Assembly (NCBI GenBank): GCA_020536535.1
Contig: JAHLWZ010000427.1
Coordinates: 1-64,000, forward strand
Direction of reading: 5' to 3'
DNA length: 64,000 nucleotides
DNA from: Pelomyxa schiedti
Taxonomy: Eukaryota > Protista > Evosea
Below, in pieces: positions 871-13,878 of this stretch. The translations under genes were made by a program, and so were the position numbers. Positions within the stretch are counted from its first letter, which is position 1. Each line of letters starts with the position of its first letter. The notes beneath the pieces were generated by a model. The model was given only the letters and a program-made list of their open reading frames with translations. It was not told the origin of the DNA and searched no databases.

Positions 871-3658
871 CTATAGCCAGGAAATACCTTTCCCGCAGGT
901 CTTCCATATCTTCTTGAAGTGATGCTTGGTCTTTCTCCTGTGTGAATGAGGAAGTGATGAGGTGCAATTAAAACCCTGCACACATACAAGGTAACTGATG
1001 TAGGATTCTAGCTCTTCTTTTTCCTTTGACAGGCCTTCACATTCTCTCTTCCAATTGAGTGGTGGAGGTAAACACTCCAGGAAAGATTCCCCCCCTTCTC
1101 CTGCACTCTGAATGAGCTGGGCAATAGCTTTCACTGGTCCCTAGTGATTTACGACTTAGGGATAAAAATAAAAAAAGGGGGAGGGAGGAAAATACCTCCT
1201 CGACACCCAGTGCCGGTACCTTGTCGGCAATAAATTGTTCCACAATGTACTCAATTTCACTGTCCCACATTGTTGGCTGCTCTTCCAGCCACTCTCTCAA
1301 TTAAACTTAATCAAACCAAGAGGACATAATCCTGACCTGAAACGAGCCCTACGACTTCTTTCTGGAATTCCCGGAATGAAGCACATATACATATCCGCAA
1401 ACTCGTCAGAGGTGGCTGTTGCCAACCAAGATTCTTTGACAAAGTCACGTAGAGATCCAGAGTGAGTTCTTCGCTGCTTTTCTTCCTCCGCAGACTCAAT
1501 TTCTGCCAATCGAGACCGTAATATCTTCAATTCCAATAGTATTTCCTCCGTTGTACATGTGGGAGAAAGGATACAAGGGGAACATTCCTGTGTTATCATT
1601 TGTACAATCAGCAAAACAGTTTGAACAGTATGGAAGGAGAAATACCATTAGTGCAGGGGCCTCTGGTTCTTGTATAACTATTGGTTCCGCGGTGTAGTTG
1701 TTTTTCCAGCTGTTCACACACTTCTCTATGACTTCTTCCCAACCAGACAAATGTGAACCTTGGAGCCACTGTCGGAATCTTGCTATTTTACTTCTTGGAG
1801 GAATTTCAGTCACCTCTTTCATGTGTTCAGTGACAAAATCTTCAATTGTATGGTGAGATAGCCACTTTTCGAGCACAAAATCCTTTAATATAACGGAGTT
1901 TCGCTTGACTTCTTCCTCAATTTCCTCTTTTTCCTTCTCCATATGGTACTGGGACAACCGATCGATCTCTTGAGACAATATAACGGTCTCTGAGGTTTTT
2001 TCACAAAGGAGTTTATTTGCCTCATGGAGTTGCATTTGGAGGTCCTTAATAATGAGGGGCCATTTGAGTTCCTCGGCACGAGCTTCATCCAATTCTGTGT
2101 GCACTCTCTCCAGCTCTTCTGCAAGTTGGACGTTTTGCTGGGAAATTGTAGTGTACTCACCTGTGCACTTCTCGATGTTCTTACGAAGAGCGTCATTTTC
2201 CGCTTCCAGATTAGCGATACGGGACTCGTGAATTTGTTGCATATCTTGATTTGGAGGTTGTGTATCTCTTACAATAGGTGCAGAACTAGTATCGTCTTTT
2301 TCCAATTCTTCATCCCAATCGGGTTCTGATGGAACACCTCCTTCCAAGAAAAGCCATGAGAGGATAGTTGCCTCAATATCTGGGACCCAAGCACATACGG
2401 CTGATTTTGGTCCAATTGCAGTGCCTTCTTGATACCATTCCCTGAGCCTCGTAGCTCTAGTGCGCTCGGGTAAGCCGTCAATCCCTCTCATGTACAGAAG
2501 AGCAAACTCTTCCATTGTTCTATCCACTAGCCACCTGGAAGAGAACTCACTTCTTATCCAGGCTGCCCTTTTCTTTTCTCGTTTGGCCAGTCGCAACTGT
2601 TCCAAATGCCCCAAAATCGAGAGTATCTGTGATGTTCCTGCCGCCTCCCACTCGTCTCCTTCTACACTCCCATCCCAACTCGTCTCATCATCCGAAAGTG
2701 TGGAGCTATATGCCCCAGAGTATTGTGGAGTGACACAAGAAGAGAAGCTGTTTTGGAAGGCGTCTTCCAACCGACCAAGTTGTTGGGGCTGGTACTGTGA
2801 CTGCGATTGTGACAGAACAACGGGATTATTATCCTCGTACTGCAACACGTTGTTGTTGTCGCCACCCCCACCAAAAAAGCACAGGCGAGGGGTAGAGTAA
2901 CTTAGCGGAATACCGCCGCTCCTTAGCCGTCCATCAAAAGCCTCCCTAGCCTCACGAAGGGTATCCCCATCCAGGTTCAAACTGCTTCTGCTACTGTGTA
3001 GGGCATTTGATAATGTGGCTGAGGGAGGTTCATTTGGAATTTCCGCACCTGATTCCAGCCATTCCGTCACCGCCCTTTCGATTTCTTCATCCCATAATCC
3101 TCTTCGCCCACCACCCGGACTCCCAATGAAACTGGCGCCCAAATTCCCGCTCGCATTTGCATTCGCAGGTGCCATTAGGTTTGACGTGGAGCTTGCAACT
3201 GCGCAGTTGATCAACCTGGCCGACGGCGGTGACGTGTGTGAAGACTCGCCAGCCGAGAGCCACTCACGCAGCCTGGCCCTTTTGGTCCTTAGATTCGAGG
3301 GGCTCGGGCACAGGTAGGCGTCGCTCGACGGGGGCGACGACGACGATAGCCCTACGCCGAGCCTCCCCATGTGAAGATCCGCGAACTCGTCAGCCGTGAA
3401 CCCGCGCGATATCCACTTTTTGCGGAAGGCCGAGCGCAGCCTCAATGTGTTGTTCTCGTCGACCTGAAGTTGCAGTGACGCCACTTGCAACTGCAGCCGC
3501 TCCGCCTGCCTCGTCAGCGACGCGATCGTCTCGTCGCGCTCGTCGGGCCTGTTCCACATCGCCGCAGCGTCCAAGTTGGTGCTGGTCCCCGACGCGTCCG
3601 CCGCACCCAACTTGCCCGCGGAACCCTGAGATGACGCTGACCTGCCCCGGGTCGACAT
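871..3658 (-). CDS. Coiled-coil protein with 4 copies of an unrecognised Trp-rich helical domain (about 4 exons)
   Basis: ORF 1496..3661 splices in frame via GT-AG introns into the 1297..1614, 1037..1300 and 871..1134 frames; the motif F..W.....[ED]F..[HY]M...R[ST][KR].[AT]R[LF]R[EQ]W...W...IE recurs 4 times. Confidence 0.85.
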
Positions 3659-3740: not shown

Positions 3741-6700
3741 ATGGAGAGGTCCCACAATACAATACGGTTCGTGTGTGATGAGGAGGAACAGTTGGTCGTT
3801 ACACCTGACTCTGTTGAAGTATCTCTGGTGCTTGAGGGATTTTTGGCAGGTTTTTGGAGCCACACCTGGCAATCATTATTCCATACTCATTTTCTTCCTG
3901 TAGAATTGACTGTGTGGCTTTCTTTTTGGAATCCAGTGAATAGGGATTTACATGGCGATGTGTGGTTACCCTTACCTGAAGGTTAATTGACAAGAGTAAC
4001 CTTTGTTTCTTTTTTGTTCCTAAGAAAACAGATAAGGTTCTACAATTTGTGGCTATGCACTGGAGTGTGATGGGGCAATGGTGGATGCTGTGATTGTTCC
4101 CAAGGCAGAAGCATCTGCTATTTATGCGTCCGAGGTGGAAATTACCCGTTTTCTACATTTGTCAGGCTCACTTTATGAAAGATGAGAGAAGGGAAGGGGG
4201 CAAGCATTGCTGAACAAATTGGGACTTCGAACATCTTCCGACTAAGGATTAACCCTCTTCCAGCTAAATCTTCACGGCTTCTCAAGGTAGCACTTTGTGC
4301 TTTCACCCGTTCAGTGACTAACATTTTTTCTCTAGGTAGTAATATCTGTTTCTTTACTACGTGACGGCCTTCTTCTCCCTCTGGCTTTTGAATCAACTTT
4401 GAGAATCGCTCACTTCCATGTTAGTATATTTTCTCCCTCTCTCCTTAAAGCAATTACTTATCCACTTTACTCCAAGGTATTTGTAACAGTTCCAATCGGG
4501 GTGTACCAACCCCCTACTATGACCTGCAACGGAAGAGAGTTCTTCTGTTGTTTTCCAGAACCCATGACAGAGGGTATTTCTCGCAGATCTCCTCCCCATA
4601 TGCAAGAGTAACATTTCTTAGAGGCAGAAATACAAAGATTTGTGGCAGATGCCTGTTTTCTGCAGTTCCAACCGCTCTCATCAGAATTTTTTACTCTGAA
4701 ACTACCATGTACCACGGGAGCTACTCTACACATCACTCCATTTGTTTCAGGACCTTTTGACCAGTTCTCTGGAGATTCGTTCTTCTATTGCAACCTTTCT
4801 GGGCTAGATTTTCCTCCATCTGCAATTGATGTTGACTCCTTCAAATTTTTCCATGTCTTAATGTGGCCAGTTTGGGAATGTGATAATATTGTGGGACTGC
4901 TCACGAAGCAGAGTACATGATCTGAGTGCTTTGGAGAAGTCTGCCCTCTAACATAGCCTAATCCTAACTTACTTAAGGGATAAACAAGCTGTCTGTGGGA
5001 TTGTTTCATCTTTCACTCCAAGAACCCAGTTGCTCCTTGGTTTTTTTAGTCATGTCATTCACTCTATTGAATATTTTGAGGTGAACACATTCACACAATC
5101 AATGCAAACACTTGTTAGACTCCATCTGTGGTTACCATTCAAGGTAGATTGAACAATGTTACTTATGACGGAGGTACCGACATCAATTGTGCCCTTTCCG
5201 TTATTGGGGACTGCGAAACTCTTGTATCACATGCATTTCTCTTTTGTGATGGCATCAACACTCTTGGGGATGAGGAAAAACTTGGAAAACTACACACAAC
5301 TGTCCCAATATTGACTGTTACATCAAGTGCCATTGTTGATTATGGCTTACTGAAGAGAGTTTCGAATATGACCTGTGGTTTTTTTGAAAATGGGTTTGAG
5401 AAGACCGCAGAAAGGTTCAGAATGACTTCCTCATACATAGAAGACTAAATTTGTATAGAATTGTTGTTGATTTAACCACTTCCAAAGACCATGGGTTTTT
5501 CCTTGGATTGGAGTCTGTGTCCGGAAAAGTAACTGATATTTTCCCAACTACCCCCTGTCCCTTTTCCACAAACGTGATTGTGACTGGCAGAATATCTGCA
5601 CATACCATTCCTGGTTAGACACAACAACAAACCTAATTTTAACTGAAATCAGAGAACATCATCTTACATTTTGGATATCCTGGGACTGAGACGAGTCAAA
5701 TTTCTCTCACTCTCACACCTTGTCGAAATAAGCCCACATCACTAATAGGTGAAATTAGGCTGCACTCTTTTGCATAGCTAATATTGATGTAGCTCCCAGA
5801 TATTGGGGACAGCAGAAAGCTGATCACATGTCACGCACTAAAGGCAATGCTAGTGCCATCGTCGAATTAGGAAGAAAGTTTCACTTTGTCTCCCCAAATT
5901 CATCTTTGCTATTGCTCGAGTCCTTAGACCAGGCATTCTACTCAAATTTTACTTTTTTAGTAAGAATACACTAGTTTTTACGGTACCAAGTGGAGCCCCC
6001 TCTCTCACTACCACTGGTTCACAGGCAATACTTGGTTCAAATAGCCCAGATGCAAGTACTTCCATCTTTGGAAAGAATGATTTTTAACTTTCCTTAGGCA
6101 CAAGAAAGGGAGCAGTCCCTACTGAAGACAGGAATTATATATAACATGTGGAAAAAAAAGAAGCAGCATTTAGATTGTGACTGGTCCACAACACAGGTTC
6201 CATATCAAAAGTGGCTAATGTAAAGTGATTTGTGATTTTCCCTGTAGACTAGACAACCAAACATACAGTACTTCATGAAGTTGGAGTCGAATTTCTCTGA
6301 GGATTACGAATCAGATATGAGAAGGTCACATGTAGAATCTCTTGTGGAGGTTTTTTACTGAGAGGGATTCTTTCTCAAATACCACCAGGTCTTTGTTGAA
6401 TTGATTGTAAAAAATGGAAAACTAGACCCAAAAACTCTTGACTTTTTACGCTCTTGTGAAGGTAATGCTTACCTCTGCGAAAATTGACAAAGCATAGACT
6501 ATGAAGTTGCATACAGTGCACTCTGTGAAGGTTTATACCAAGGGACCATTATAACTGAGCAGATTTTACCTTGTATTGTCCAAGATATACAAAAAGAGGG
6601 TTTGTGCCCCAAGTAAAACACTTCCACTCACTTTTCCAGGGGATCCAACACAATTTTTCAAGTTACTTGAAACTGTTGACGACGATGATATTCCTCAGGG

Positions 6701-9470
6701 GATTTCTTCTACTCCAGCCACTTTGGGAATGACACCTGAAGAAAATACTAGGACTGCCCGTTTTATGCACTTTTTAGCTTCTCGGAGAGCAGTTTCCGAA
6801 GAACTTGTTCCCCATGCTCTTGTAGCGGGCACTACGGTTCTAAACATGTTGCATATGATCGAAGGCAAAGCGTCATCAGCTGAAGAAAAATGCTCTTTCA
6901 GTTTATCGTACCCTCTTCCATGCCTTCTCCAATTAATGTCCCCTAGAAAGGCAAGGTGCATTGAGTTCCTTGGGAGCTTAATTTTTAATTCCACACGAAA
7001 GTCCCACCTGCTTCAGATCACTGAGAATAGTTATAGGGAGGTGTATGACTATACTCGTAAAAATTTTCCCGCCAATGATACAACAAGGTTGATATCCAAC
7101 AATAATGCCATATTAACTTGAAAAAGACTAAGAGCCGGGCTCAGATTGATGCACTTCTATTCAAATATCCTACAGGATACCGTCAAAGCCGGCGTAATTG
7201 GAAAAAGTACTTTCGATGACGCTATTTCAGAGCTTGGTAGGGTCCATCTTTCAACGGTGTTTATGTAATGTCAGAAAAGACAGTCTTGAAGAATCAAGTT
7301 ATAAAGACTCAACGCTCATCCTGCAGTTCATCAGAGACGAACTGACTTCTATGACAGTTGGATTTTTTACGGTTTTCTTTTTTAATTACATTACTTTAGC
7401 AAGACAACGAAGACGAACAAGTTTTAGATGAAGTTTGCAATACAGAAGGTGATTGCACTATGCCAGCAAATACCACAGTATCTCAAGACAACCAAACTTC
7501 CAATCTCTCTCAAGAGCCACAAATAACCAATGTGATCAACGTTTTATCTACTCAACTCACATCCTGTTGATTTTTGTCCTTTTCTAGGAGTACATAGTAG
7601 ATACTGCAGTGAATTCACCCAATGGTAGTGCGCCTTCCTCTTGCGCATTTTTTCCCTGTTTTTCTCAGCACAGAGATTAGATACTGCAGTATGTATGGAA
7701 AGAAGAACTGGGAGAGCGCCGAGTTCAAACACGCAACGTTTATTGAAAACTGCAATGACTAAACTGGCACCTTTCCACAAGGTAAGAAAAACCTTGCATA
7801 AGGGAAGTAGCGATATTCACTTTCAGATCTACCCTGTTTTTATGCGAGGCCGTCAAATTTCACCTGAGAGGGTTGACGAACTTGCTGGCATTCTGGCCCA
7901 GTACCACTGGGGAGATTGTCCACCCACTTTGGAGGTTCCATGCTACTCTTATTCTCTTAGCTTACTTTTGAAGCCCCACAATATAAACTGGTCTCTTTGT
8001 TTGCCCCCACAGTTCAGAGAGGAAAACCACATTTCAGGAACTTGTGCTGCATGGTACAAACTCAAAGGTACACATAAAATCGACCTCTGCTCGATGTTTG
8101 TGGATGCTTTTCCGCAGAGCACTTTGGGTAAACCTGGACCTGGAGCGTGTGTGGTGTGTACCACGAGTCCTTTGTTAAGGAATATCCGAATAGCTCTCTC
8201 TGGTAGACCACAAGGTTTACTGTCAAACAAAACAGTCATTTCCTTAATAATAGTTACCTAAGATCTCAGCGCCACGTATGAGAAAGAAGTGCCAAAATTC
8301 AGTGCTCTACCATGGATATGCATGGAATGTGCTCTACTTCTTTTACCCTACGACCCTTTTCTTGCCAAACAGTAGTTTGTCACAGTCTAGGCCTGGTCTG
8401 AAGAAAAATTAGGGTTGTAACAAATGTCATTGAGCAAAATCCTGACGAAGGAATGATGCTGAGGGCAGCTTCTTATATCCTTCTACTTGCTAATGAGGAA
8501 AAGTAGAAGCAGTTCTTTTTACGGAGTCACTCACCTCCATCAGTTGTGCAGTCCAGTGTCTCTCGAAAGTATTGGAACTATTGCCCAACGAACCACAGTC
8601 ATATTGGGAATTGGCTTGGTGCATAAGCAGGCCCTCATTTTATAAACTCTCCAACAAAGGTACACTTCTAATTTATTTATGTTCTCACTAGGACCAAGAA
8701 AAACTTTCTAAGACTGTTAGCCTGTTATTTGATATGGTGGACAAACCTTGGAGTAAGATTTTTTTTGGATCGGAGTTAACTGCAATTACAGTATATCCAG
8801 TAGATTCTTTCCTTATTTGATAAATTGCAGAGTCTCAATGCCATATACACCCACTGCCAAAGCACAGGGTATTACTCTTACTATTTTCTTCTTTTTTTAT
8901 TTTCTCCAACCCGTTTTACAGAGAAAGAGTATCTCAACTAGAAGAACTTGATAGCAGGTTTCTTTGTGAAGTTGATACTGATATCAGAATCGTGGCTACC
9001 TGGTAGAAACACTTATCAAATATAACATCCACACTCACTTAAATCAGGAACTGCTGTGCCGATGTATCCCTAATTATAACGGAACCCAATTCCGAGAAGT
9101 GTTCCCCGTTCCACAATCACACCTCGAGCGGGGGAGTCTTATCTCGTGATTTTCCTACTGGCGGGGCTCCCATTGAGTACCAGGTAGTTTTTTTTTTTTT
9201 GCTTTTCACTTAGCTGCTTTGCATAGATAAGGAATGCACCCCGTGGAAGCTATGAAGTTTCCGTTTCTCTCTTCTCACAGATAAGCAGGTTTTAGCGGAG
9301 CCACAAAATCTAAGTTTCTTTCGACTAACAAAAACATAAGAAATCCAGTTGTTGTGTATGTTGTGGTAATGAGGAACTTTGGCAGACCCAACTACACATG
9401 GAACCACTATGTAGGCCTCCTCACACACCCCAAACATCAAGTTACACTGGCAATACTCTCCCTATGAAAA
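3741..9470 (+). CDS. Multi-exon VIT - vWA - divergent 14-3-3 - TPR-like - DUF2135(YfaP-like) protein; 3' end approximate
   Basis: Spliced peptides: ELTVWLSFWNPVNRDLHGDVWLPLPEG/STICGYALECDGAMVDAVIVPKAEASAIY (VIT); YDGGTDI...AFLFCDGINTLG (vWA); [52 protein letters not shown] (14-3-3); DIRIVATW...ITEPNSEKCSPFHNHTSSGGVLSRDF..GGAPIEYQIRNAPRGSY (DUF2135). Confidence 0.8.
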
Positions 9471-9557: not shown

Positions 9558-12179
9558 CTACAACAAACACTGCTGGGCAAACATAACGTCATCATAGGGG
9601 TGCCTGTAAATGGGTTGCTTCAGTCTTTTTTGGTCTAGCGCGTGGCCTATAAGACCAATACTGCGAGATAGGGCAAATAGCCCAGTCAGATATCTTCGAA
9701 GTGGGACTTAGAAACTAGTAGGAAGGAACAGGGATTACCCGAGTTCCACTATTTCTTTCATTTCTCGTTTTGTGAAAGCTGGGGAACTATCCATCATGTC
9801 CAAGAAGAGGACTCCAACAACGCCATCCTCGTTTTTAGTTATTTTACTTTACAGTGAAGAAGGAACCTACAACGTTCAAGATAAGATTATTTGCCTTTTG
9901 CAAAGTACATCGCTCCACCTACTTGATTGTAAGTATTGCAAGTTTTAGGTTAGCTCTCACCTCCAAAGCAAAGTTAAGGTACATGTGCACAGGGAAATTA
10001 TCCAGAGCGTAGCGGGTGAGAATAGAAACCCTTTTGTCAGGTACATGAATACTTTTGATGTGGTGACCAATCCCAGGGATAAGGGCGCCATCATGTCGCA
10101 TCTTCTCAACAAATGCTTCTGGGCTCAACCCACTTTCAACTGCATGATAAAAGCAACGTGCAACATCGTCAGAGGCCCCTCCAAATCGAGGTCCAATGGA
10201 CAGAAGACCAGCACACAAACAGGACATAAGATCTTTTCCTGCACTAGGAATATAAGTACAAATAATAGAGAGATCAAAGCAAGAAGACAGTACCGTGATG
10301 TTACAATGGTGGAGTGAGCAGCACTAACACAAGGTCCGTGATCGGCACATAAGATCAGCACAAGCTCAAGAAAACGAGAAGCGTAACTTGCAATCCGTCT
10401 TTTGAACCACAGTAAAGCTATTATATCACCAATTTTAACATCTTGTTGTATAAGCTCACTTATGGGAATGCCTGCTGTGTTGTTAGCTGTGAGCAACGTT
10501 GGTTGTTTCGGGTAACCAGAGTATGACGGCTCGTCCCCTCTGTCGTCACATATTGTAGAGATTATTCCTGTGGACCTTCGAACAAATCCGGCTTTGTTGG
10601 CCTGGAAATAGCCTTGAGGTACACAGGCTGGGGCTATTCAATGTTACTTGCGTATTTACAAATATGCAACGGAAAGTACGAAAATCAGGTGCTGGAAACA
10701 AACGACCACTATCCAGCAATTGCCTATAGACAGTTGAAATTGTCTCCCCCAAGTCAGCAAAACTATTAGGTACTTGAACACCAGCTTCTGCAAGAGCCTA
10801 GACAAAGGTAAAAAGTGATATATGAGGAGTGCATGAAAAGTACTCTATTTTTTATTACAGCACTTTCAACATCAGTTGTTGTTCTAAACACTGTATGAAA
10901 TAAATGTGTCTGAGCAGGAATGTATTTTGCACATGTCCCAATAACCCAAGCTACAACAGGTTTTTTTACTAGTCCCTCCTGTTGGGAAGATTTGTGTAAA
11001 AGAAACCAAAATATAAGAAACCTTAACGACATGGCATATTTCATACTCATCGTACCCACCAACTTCTCCTAACACTACAATGATTTTCACTTCTTCAATT
11101 GCCTCAAACCGCACTATATGCTCTGCCATAGTACTGCCTGTATAAATGTCGGAGCCTACTGATACACATTCATAGATGCCATCTGTTGTCCTGCAGGGAT
11201 ATGGGAACCATTTTACTGTTATGGGGCGAAGTACTTGGCAATGAGATTGCACATCTCGTTTGCTAATCCCGAAGATTTTGTTACAAGCCCGACTGAGCCA
11301 GGCCTATACATTTTACACTGCAGGATGTTGTCAATGGTACCTCCTGTATCTCCAACTTTGAATGCTCCCGCCTACAGGTAGGAGATCAGTAAGGACAACG
11401 CTAAAAAGAGGAAAACGGGATGTCCACAATACAAAAAGAGGCAAAATTCGACAGAAGAGCAACAGAAGGGGGAAGGAAAAAAAAAAGTACGCTCTTGGAT
11501 TGCTCCAACGGTGCCGGGCCCGATAATCGTCTTGCCATTTCTATTTGCAGTGACAATGAGGCGCCTTACATCATTCTCGGGTACACCTTCTGTGACAATG
11601 ATAACCACCCTAAAAGAAGCATGGGTCGTGTGGGATTTGTAACAAAGTGAGATACCGTATACTCTGTGTATTAAGAGCAACAAGGGAGGATTTGTAAACA
11701 GTTCGATGAGAAGTGAAGTTTATAAACACGTCAGCCTGTAGTAGCTAAGAAGTCCATTTCCCAAATCAATACAATAAAATACCGTTGGATTGGCCATTAC
11801 GGCTTCAGATATACTATCGTAAATAGGAATGAGGATTTCAGTGGCACCAAAAAAAACCTTGTGTGCACTGGACCTAGCGCCGGGATGAACAATCCCTATC
11901 ACCAACGTTAAGGGCTTTTTCTTTCCCATACCAACAACAAGGAAAACCATTTACACAAAGGCCACAAAAAGACACACCGACGATGCTGGGTTGGTCTTTC
12001 CTGCACACAAAGTCGAAGTCGAGCATTCGCTGGATGGGATGGGGCTTCAGGTGGTACAGTATCGCCTTGCTGTTGCACGACAACAACCTCGTGCGATTCA
12101 TTGATGCAATCTGCTGCTGTTGCATCCTTCCTGATGGCGACGGTGACGGTGTCGACGAGGCGCTGAGAAATAGATCCAT
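9558..12179 (-). CDS. ACLB: ATP-citrate lyase subunit B (SCS-alpha-like plus citryl-CoA lyase domains), multi-exon; start at 12179 or 12125
   Basis: [127 protein letters not shown]. Confidence 0.93.
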
Positions 12180-12324
12180 GGATTGGATTTCCTTTTCTGT
12201 TGCCGGAGTTGGTTTGTTTGTCAGTTTTGCTGGGCGATACATACAGGGGAGTTCGAGAAGAGAGACTTGTGCCCCAGGCACTTCCACTTTTTTTTCTCGA
12301 GAACAACAGGAATCAAAATCAACA

Positions 12325-13878
12325 ATGGCTAGACTGCTGCGTTACATCGCCATCTTGGTCTTGTTCCTCTTATTTCCCGTGATAAACATTGTGGTGTGGC
12401 ACCACACGTCGTCGGTGTGCGTCACTCCAGTGTTCCCTCTCCCGAACATCACCACGATATCACCAAGAGTGGAAGCCGAACGCCCAGACTGCGAACAACC
12501 GAAAGTCAATGTTGTATGCAACGCCACCGCCGTGATCCCATGCCCTGAGCCCAGATGTGAGCCGTGTCCATCGCCCGATTGTGCAGCAGATTGTATCACC
12601 GAGACCCCCGCTGCATCAGATGTACGCTCGTTGAGGTTCGAGCGCTGGAAGCAAGACATCCACTCCCACACGCAGAGACAGGTGTTGGAGCGCGCACGGT
12701 CTCAGTCAATGACGCAAGCGGCGACGAAACCCAGAACCTCGTGCCTGCCAAAGTTGAACAACCACACCTTCAGGTTCGACATCGAACGTCGGAACAGACA
12801 CTTGAAAGAGTGGGCGCAGGAGGCGGAAGCGTTTTACAGGGAACGCCCACAGTTCCTGCACAGTTGCGAGGGGAAGACGGTTCTGTGCATCATGGGAGTG
12901 CTGCACATTTACGATGGGTTCAAGGGGCCAATGGGCGATCTTGTTCAATGGAGTGACCTGATCAGTGCCTTGTCCTTTCTTGGCTATTCTGTCACCGTTG
13001 TGAACTCGAGCAAGGCAGTGAAGCCAGCGGACATGTCCAAGTATTGGAGGGTTGTGTCTGACTACCTGGGCATGCTTGGCACAAACATTGATGCATTCAG
13101 AGACAAGCTTTTCGTCATTGACACGTTTGGAACGAGCATCCAGGGAAATATAGTTGAGAGCCAACTGTACGGTGGCAGGAATCTTACGGACTTGCGAAGG
13201 ATTCTCACTCTTGTGCCTGATGCACACCCTCTCAATACATTCCTGGGAACAGTTTCCCCCCCAAGCGATGCAACAAGGGCAATGACCATGGAGTGGAAGG
13301 CACTCATCTGGGGAAAGCTCGCTGCTTACTTTCGCCTCCCTGGAGTTCAGGACTACCTCTCCCAGATCACTCAGAAATTGCCCGTGTTCGCATCAGCAGA
13401 GAGCGGCACAGACTTCCCGCCTCAAGTGGGAAACAAGGGGGTCATGAGGCAGAAAGACTACATCGAATTGCTGTCACAGACTGCAGTGTTTGTGGGCGTG
13501 GGTCAGCCTTACATTGGCACCGCCGCCTTTGACGCTGTTCGCCAGGGCTCTGTTCTCCTCAACCCGATGTTCGACCCCCCACTCAACTTCTGGCCTGGCA
13601 AGCCAACAGACTGGCCCCTCACATCACAACACCCTTGGGTTGAGAGAATCGGAGCTCCGTGTGTGCAGAATGTTAGAATCAACGATCGGAAGTCGGTGGC
13701 AATGGCACTGGAGGAGGCCCGTGACTACCACGACTTTGTCAAAGTGCACGGACCACACCCTTGTGCACTTGTTCCAGAGGCGTCAATGGGTGCCTTCGTT
13801 TGTCGTGCGTTTGCTGCATTCAACGAATTGTGGGACTGGCAGTGTTTGCACCCAGTTGCCAGGCACTGGAACTTGTGA
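12325..13878 (+). CDS. Glycosyltransferase family 18 (MGAT5/GnT-V-like), type II membrane protein, intronless
   Basis: N-terminal TM MARLLRYIAILVLFLLFPVINIVVW and Cys/Pro stem; GPMGDLVQWSDLISAL, IDTFGT, NTFLG, LIWGK, FVGVGQPY..AAFDA..QGSVLLNP.F.PP and KPT..LTSQHP match GT18 motifs. Confidence 0.9.
   Translation: MARLLRYIAILVLFLLFPVINIVVWHHTSSVCVTPVFPLPNITTISPRVEAERPDCEQPKVNVVCNATAVIPCPEPRCEPCPSPDCAADCITETPAASDVRSLRFERWKQDIHSHTQRQVLERARSQSMTQAATKPRTSCLPKLNNHTFRFDIERRNRHLKEWAQEAEAFYRERPQFLHSCEGKTVLCIMGVLHIYDGFKGPMGDLVQWSDLISALSFLGYSVTVVNSSKAVKPADMSKYWRVVSDYLGMLGTNIDAFRDKLFVIDTFGTSIQGNIVESQLYGGRNLTDLRRILTLVPDAHPLNTFLGTVSPPSDATRAMTMEWKALIWGKLAAYFRLPGVQDYLSQITQKLPVFASAESGTDFPPQVGNKGVMRQKDYIELLSQTAVFVGVGQPYIGTAAFDAVRQGSVLLNPMFDPPLNFWPGKPTDWPLTSQHPWVERIGAPCVQNVRINDRKSVAMALEEARDYHDFVKVHGPHPCALVPEASMGAFVCRAFAAFNELWDWQCLHPVARHWNL

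Follow-up and report, generated by a model that had tools for sequence, protein, structure and literature searches.

A 64,000-nucleotide stretch of the Pelomyxa schiedti genome (contig JAHLWZ010000427.1, positions 1 to 64,000; hereafter the window) carries a gene in which a degenerate 14-3-3 domain lies in a loop of a VIT-vWA scaffold of bacterial type. Few free-standing eukaryotic adaptors are as invariant as the 14-3-3s, which are almost always stand-alone dimers. Alignments show that the phosphopeptide groove of this copy has decayed and that the outer pocket of helices 8 and 9 has been kept. In all nine scaffold paralogs that we tested, domain searches show other core host proteins in the corresponding loop. 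A 14-3-3 copy that has lost its groove and keeps the pocket is a natural separation-of-function experiment, and it suggests that the helix-8/9 pocket is itself under selection. We put the probability at about 50% that the insert serves as bait or decoy on a cytosolic, ITIH-like trap scaffold.

A sequence-only reading of this DNA had proposed one transcript over 3741-9470. We kept its start and moved its end to 9467, the last base of the stop codon. Gene structure suggests a single transcript over 3741-9467. The features of the gene, all on the + strand, are as follows.

3741..9467, +, scaffold gene: 35 exons, 34 introns, ~1414 aa, ATG at 3741, TGA at 9467
3741..4286, +, VIT domain, exons 1-4 (PF08487 positions 44-72 in exon 3 and 76-105 in exon 4; bacterial-profile positions 61-147)
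4871..5414, +, vWA domain; MIDAS complete, its DxSxS lying in exon 7 and its T and D motifs in exon 9
5459..6196, +, hybrid beta-sandwich followed by helices, stopping right before the variable loop (profile positions 431-571; visual alignment with paralog C292)
6248..8214, +, variable loop, ~500 aa, exons 15-26 (gene model and scaffold alignment)
6660..6791, +, faint candidate remnant of 14-3-3 helices 1-3
6837..7356, +, degenerate 14-3-3 running from the end of helix 4 through helix 9 (zeta 97-229; Pfam, PDB, profile alignment)
6908..6946, +, intron of phase 2 that splits the Met121-aligned codon
7209..7329, +, surface of helix 8, turn and helix 9, selectively retained, ~zeta 195-219, split by intron 7237-7279
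7827..8213, +, second loop segment, single copy in the genome
8263..8868, +, TPR-like helical repeats (TPR_11, E = 0.032, exon 29; bacterial profile)
8922..9467, +, YfaP_C/DUF2135-like C-terminal beta domain (paralog C292, tblastn E = 8e-13)

With VIT, MIDAS-bearing vWA, TPR and YfaP-like end in order, the host protein is, as judged from its predicted domains, a member of the VIT-vWA-TPR-YfaP_C (DUF2135) architecture. It is neither an ITIH nor an NLR. Exon-wise Pfam searches matched PF08487 in exons 3 and 4 (E = 0.008 and 0.011). PF09906 had no direct match in any scanned exon, including exon 33, and a genome-wide search with it gave only paralog C292, which bears this domain above cut-off. 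Because no exon scores PF09906 and the domain is split by introns, the DUF2135-like end was assigned via homologues; exon 33 reaches 31.5 bits on the bacterial scaffold profile. Of the VIT-vWA-DUF2135 scaffold originally proposed, the VIT and vWA domains were thus recovered directly and the C-terminal end only through its homologues.

On the profile of bacterial VIT-vWA-TPR-YfaP proteins, exons 2-13 follow one another over positions 61-571, as do exons 29-35 over positions 801-1026. This colinearity confirms that the 14-3-3 exons lie between the vWA region and the TPR/DUF2135 region on the same strand. The Pelomyxa gene resembles the bacterial proteins (P0003-P0006) in domain order, MIDAS and variable loop; it differs in being intron-rich, in having no apparent signal peptide and in its ~500-aa loop with a eukaryotic module. 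In a predicted model of bacterial P0005 (pTM 0.45), the loop equivalent is disordered (residues 598-707, ~110 residues), and the closest solved fold to that model is ITIH1 (Foldseek E = 1e-22). A hydropathy scan of exon 1 found no hydrophobic N-terminus, and the scaffold protein is probably cytosolic.

The 34 introns are 29-56 nt long (median 42.5 nt), with compatible phases and no internal stop in a three-frame reading. Their GC is 0.36, compared with 0.43 for the exons, and one of them (5933-5974) is GC-AG, as are 1.6% of P. schiedti introns (PMC8887013). Most loop introns have splice-site scores similar to those of flank introns. For a one-protein model, frame compatibility is a weak argument and the homology of both halves a stronger one, and taken together they suggest that the scaffold is one protein.

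The 14-3-3 exons could instead belong to a separate or nested pseudogene, the gene could be split, or the locus could be a chimera of whole-genome amplification. The assembly that we searched (52.37 Mb, 5337 contigs; reported as 52.4 Mb in 5337 scaffolds, PMC8887013) comes from amplified single cells, threading an open frame through short GT-AG introns is permissive, and introns 18, 20, 24 and 25 each have one weak splice site. However, bacteria have the N-terminal and C-terminal scaffold halves joined in a single protein, and so do intron-poor paralogs such as C530, a single 1249-codon frame annotated as one protein and deposited for Pelomyxa schiedti. Bypassing the loop would require a ~2.07-kb intron, when the longest in the gene model is 56 nt, and the same layout is repeated in nine paralogs. 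The insert has no close match at any other locus in a genome search, which argues against a chimera made from any gene present in the genome today. We regard a mis-joined or split gene as very improbable.

The 14-3-3 homology spans exons 18-21 (6640-6907, 6947-7087, 7127-7236 and 7280-7356). The translated exons and the three short introns between them (6908-6946, 7088-7126 and 7237-7279) are as first described; of the initial domain span, 6780-7356, the end holds and solid homology begins only at 6837. Exon-wise Pfam searches gave colinear PF00244 matches to positions 171-197 in exon 20 (E = 0.13, 12.2 bits) and 198-221 in exon 21 (E = 8e-4, 19.4 bits), neither exon by itself reaching the gathering score of 33.2 bits. 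When the PDB was searched by sequence, the 60 matches listed for exon 21 were all 14-3-3 chains, as were 53 of the 54 that exon 20 gave. We also aligned the exons, with anchoring, to a profile built from 38 full-length 14-3-3s, using 300 shuffles per exon. The C-terminal end of exon 18 (zeta 97-120, z = 5.2) and exon 19 (zeta 122-166, z = 3.6) were each equalled by 1/300 shuffles, and exon 20 (zeta 168-203, z = 8.9) and exon 21 (zeta 205-229, z = 11.4) by 0/300. Identity to the 14-3-3 consensus is 49/130 (38%).

The N-terminal helices 1-3, with the dimer interface and K49/R56, are at most faintly visible. The candidate remnant at 6660-6791 was equalled by 2/200 shuffles in local alignment and, when chained, by 27/250, which is not significant; MAFFT places it at the same position. 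If real, it implies that ~30 residues of helices 3-4 were deleted. An AlphaFold model of the 6642-7085 fragment had low confidence (pLDDT 51).

At least nine free-standing 14-3-3 genes are present in the Pelomyxa genome, several of them strongly divergent. The phase-2 intron at Met121 is common in position to all nine of these genes, indicating that the insert arose as a DNA-level copy of a gene with introns. This intron has a length of 3n and no stop, so its retention would preserve the frame. The other two insert introns are not shared with the free-standing genes. These comparisons show, at sequence level, that the exposed scaffold loop received a 14-3-3 gene with its introns long ago, and the shared intron supports the proposal that a eukaryotic 14-3-3 was shuffled into a bacterial-type VIT-vWA scaffold. 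In a donor comparison the insert was nearest to the canonical C1092/C424 type, but Pelomyxa P0017 ranked 15 of 41, so that no donor paralog could be assigned. A genome search found no second fused 14-3-3 copy. Divergent free-standing 14-3-3s lie on contigs C918, C204, C1068 and C1526 (L009-L011, L023, L008, L006); those of C204 form a tandem pair whose helix-8/9 pocket is altered, and the C918 protein keeps 6/15 groove positions.

Decay of the insert is lopsided. It keeps only three of 15 groove positions, on a list that we take partly from general knowledge, and G169R and V176H further remodel the groove. None of the four residues of the phospho-clamp set (R127, Y128, N173 and N224; PMC9523730) is retained, the changes being R127E, Y128F, N173R and N224E. 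The register first given for the KMKGDYxRY segment and the loss of both groove Asn residues are borne out by this alignment. With the clamp at 0/4, the data support the conclusion that the insert is incapable of canonical phosphopeptide binding. The earlier idea of a repurposed non-phospho-binding or decoy module therefore stands in its first half, and its decoy half is still interpretation.

Nine residues line the helix-8/9 pocket (PMC11375770; an independent list, its sigma numbers lowered by 2). The insert is identical at eight of them and has Leu for Met at the ninth, a proportion that differs significantly from the groove (Fisher P = 0.002) and from other invariant positions (32/82; P = 0.009). 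Within helix 9 alone, the contrast between outer (7/8) and groove (4/8) positions was not significant (P = 0.28). Across zeta 195-219, 17 of 19 invariant positions are kept. Conservation drops again at zeta 220-229, so the pattern is not a simple end-to-end gradient. The C204 free-standing 14-3-3 has 3/9 pocket and 15/15 groove positions, and that of C918 has 3/9 pocket and 3/4 clamp residues. Since the most divergent free-standing paralogs drop the pocket and keep most or all of the clamp, the pocket is not merely the slowest part of the protein. The pattern of the insert, groove lost and pocket kept, occurs in none of the free-standing paralogs.

Relative to the closest paralogs, synonymous sites in helices 8-9 are saturated (12/20 and 16/20; expectation 0.63), which points to selection and rules out recent gene conversion from these paralogs. 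The comparison with C240, whose protein is less similar, fell under expectation (6/17). A decaying relic, tolerated in a permissive loop, would leave helices 8-9 as a stable hairpin or as unfinished decay. Such a relic would fit the 38% identity, the near loss of helices 1-3, the low-confidence fragment model and the four paralogs (C292, C469, C940 and C1082) whose loops are low-complexity only. The pocket residues F196, I200 and L203 may indeed have been kept for fold stability. However, the polar pocket residues K212, T215, Q219 and R222 are retained as well, the invariant positions of helices 8-9 persist despite synonymous saturation, and the frame is intact through four exons. We consider a relic improbable.

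Compared with canonical 14-3-3s (Pelomyxa P0017, human zeta), the insert is alike in its colinearity with zeta 97-229, its Met121 intron and its near-intact helix 8 - turn - helix 9. It differs in sitting in a ~1414-aa gene model instead of forming a free-standing ~30-kDa dimer, in having no convincing dimerisation helices, and in its lost clamp and remodelled groove. Because clamp and free-standing dimer both fail, we do not class this 14-3-3 derivative as a 14-3-3 protein.

The family to which the scaffold gene belongs has at least 17 members, and the C-terminal domain matches 18 places in the genome, including the window. Pfam searches of open frames identified the following loop modules: PRP1_N (C530), ubiquitin plus E2 (C757), Ras-like domains (C954 and C267), PH (C1059), G-patch (C815), Slu7 (C828), Pol II CTD repeats (C907; L062/L063 correspond to C907 and C1089) and a tubulin GTPase fragment (C923, L067). 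In all nine paralogs tested, the host modules sit between scaffold positions ~610 and ~760. In four other paralogs, the frames examined contained no module. Bacterial P0006 has a SusC/TonB-receptor plug domain in the corresponding loop (L072), so loop insertion is not confined to amoebae. This family with its differing host modules, like the selective retention of the helix-8/9 pocket, goes beyond what the sequence-only reading had noticed.

The C907 and C1089 scaffold paralogs, both with Pol II CTD repeats in the loop, look near-identical. Across the whole genome, 73 VIT exon matches on ~50 contigs indicate a VIT-vWA expansion broader than the YfaP-type family. The segment at 7827-8213 had no Pfam or PHROG match and no significant PDB match; it has a faint DndB/ParB-like resemblance (best Atlas match 0.79) and could be another captured module. 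No family was found for exons 15-17 and 22-26, and Atlas matches of 0.79 and 0.87 for loop exons were treated as noise. PF00244 was absent from 16 scaffold matches (15 distinct proteins), which are too few to gauge the spread of the architecture, and the 14-3-3 protein search covered proteins up to ~300 aa. P0001, from the representatives search, is a spurious repeat protein. A narrow search, mainly of the open literature and centred on the scaffold domains and on 14-3-3 in Pelomyxa, found no paper on the fusion or the paralog family.

The kept surface is the one on which 14-3-3-activated effectors act. The bacterial toxins ExoS and ExoT contact 14-3-3 at helices 8-9 and the intervening turn, and do not require the groove (PMC6141617). 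Legionella Lem8 is also activated by 14-3-3, and phosphorylation of Lem8 was not detected; where on 14-3-3 Lem8 binds has yet to be mapped, and few strains carry it (PMC8871388). This surface, the worn hub-protein copies in the loops and the ITIH and NLR precedents are our reasons for favouring a bait. The insert would offer the 14-3-3 surface that foreign enzymes exploit as a "host-cell" cofactor, and its dead groove and missing dimer would leave the cell's own phosphoproteins unsequestered. Once the loop is bound, cut or modified, the VIT-vWA core with its MIDAS would be triggered, in the way that bait cleavage triggers ITIH4, and the core would then clamp the intruder or signal through the TPR/YfaP end. 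Candidate intruders would be viruses or the effectors of ingested or endosymbiotic prokaryotes. We know of no 14-3-3-using parasite of Pelomyxa. That the gene is expressed as a single protein, that the insert folds, that it has a ligand and that it acts in defence are all inferred. The cytosol of P. schiedti houses many prokaryotic endosymbionts (PMC8887013).

ITIH4 is a MIDAS-dependent bait-and-trap inhibitor that, once cut, holds the protease via its MIDAS (PMC7793589). ITIH4 and ITIH1 share with the Pelomyxa scaffold the N-terminal core fold, as predicted from the bacterial homologue model, an intact MIDAS and a flexible region after the core. ITIHs are secreted, whereas the Pelomyxa N-terminus is not hydrophobic; the ITIH4 bait is a protease-susceptible stretch and not a host-protein domain, and ITIHs have no TPR/YfaP end. 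Cleavage followed by trapping is a feature of ITIH4 and would apply to the Pelomyxa scaffold by analogy only.

Plant NLRs carry integrated, sometimes inactive copies of host proteins as bait, which are thought to be effector targets (PMC4759884). The Pelomyxa family is similar in its paralogous scaffold with diverse, sometimes inactivated host-protein copies, but it has no NB-ARC or LRR and no known signalling output. We found no match to NB-ARC/NACHT or LRR in the exons scanned, and the scaffold explains the flanks. The lack of an NLR-like signalling or effector domain counts against a bait. The text and supplements of the NLR survey do not mention 14-3-3 (PMC4759884).

The main rival to a bait is a housekeeping adaptor, both relic and mis-joined gene being less likely. 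The insert would then be a neofunctionalised label whose helices 8-9 bind a host client and recruit the vWA scaffold, with paralogs aimed at different cell processes. The yeast trehalase site on 14-3-3 overlaps that of ExoS/ExoT (PMC6141617), and since the pocket also binds this host client, its retention is equally compatible with an ordinary adaptor. Purifying selection on the pocket likewise suits stable host partners. A cytosolic Dictyostelium VIT-vWA protein works with a host F-box protein (PMC10539598), a partnership of the kind that an adaptor would have. Cytosolic VWA5A/Vwa1-type proteins (PMC10539598) share with the Pelomyxa family an intracellular VIT-vWA core and a lineage-specific expansion in amoebae; the features given for them in the section on these proteins include neither a TPR-YfaP end nor inserted host domains. 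However, the main client-binding groove is destroyed, loop content differs between paralogs, and the family inserts are worn copies of hub proteins rather than domains that normally recognise hubs. We therefore think a housekeeping adaptor unlikely, though a serious competitor to the bait.

If the family works as bait, it would be an integrated-decoy system beyond plant NLRs, in an endosymbiont-rich amoeba. It would also offer a candidate function for bacterial VIT-vWA-TPR-YfaP proteins, whose function is not characterised in the literature that we searched. A broader version of the bait reading can be put forward only tentatively. The paralogs may form an undescribed cell-autonomous immune system of Archamoebae, built from ITIH-like trap scaffolds whose loops are decoys of microbe-exploited host proteins; the member here would be a 14-3-3 decoy cut down to the surface that effectors need. 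If this is true, the set of loops is a catalogue of effector targets in amoebae.

Three other genes were noted near the scaffold gene. A head-to-head neighbour at 1297-3658 (- strand), 82 bp from the scaffold start, repeats an unnamed motif of ~55 aa about four times, with coiled coils in between, and matches no Pfam family above cut-off. Convergent to the scaffold gene, an ATP-citrate-lyase-like gene at ~9919-11950 (- strand) scores above cut-off for a CoA-ligase domain and for the C-terminal domain of citrate synthase. At 11983-13878 (+ strand) lies a single-frame glycosyltransferase family 18 gene (E = 2e-42).
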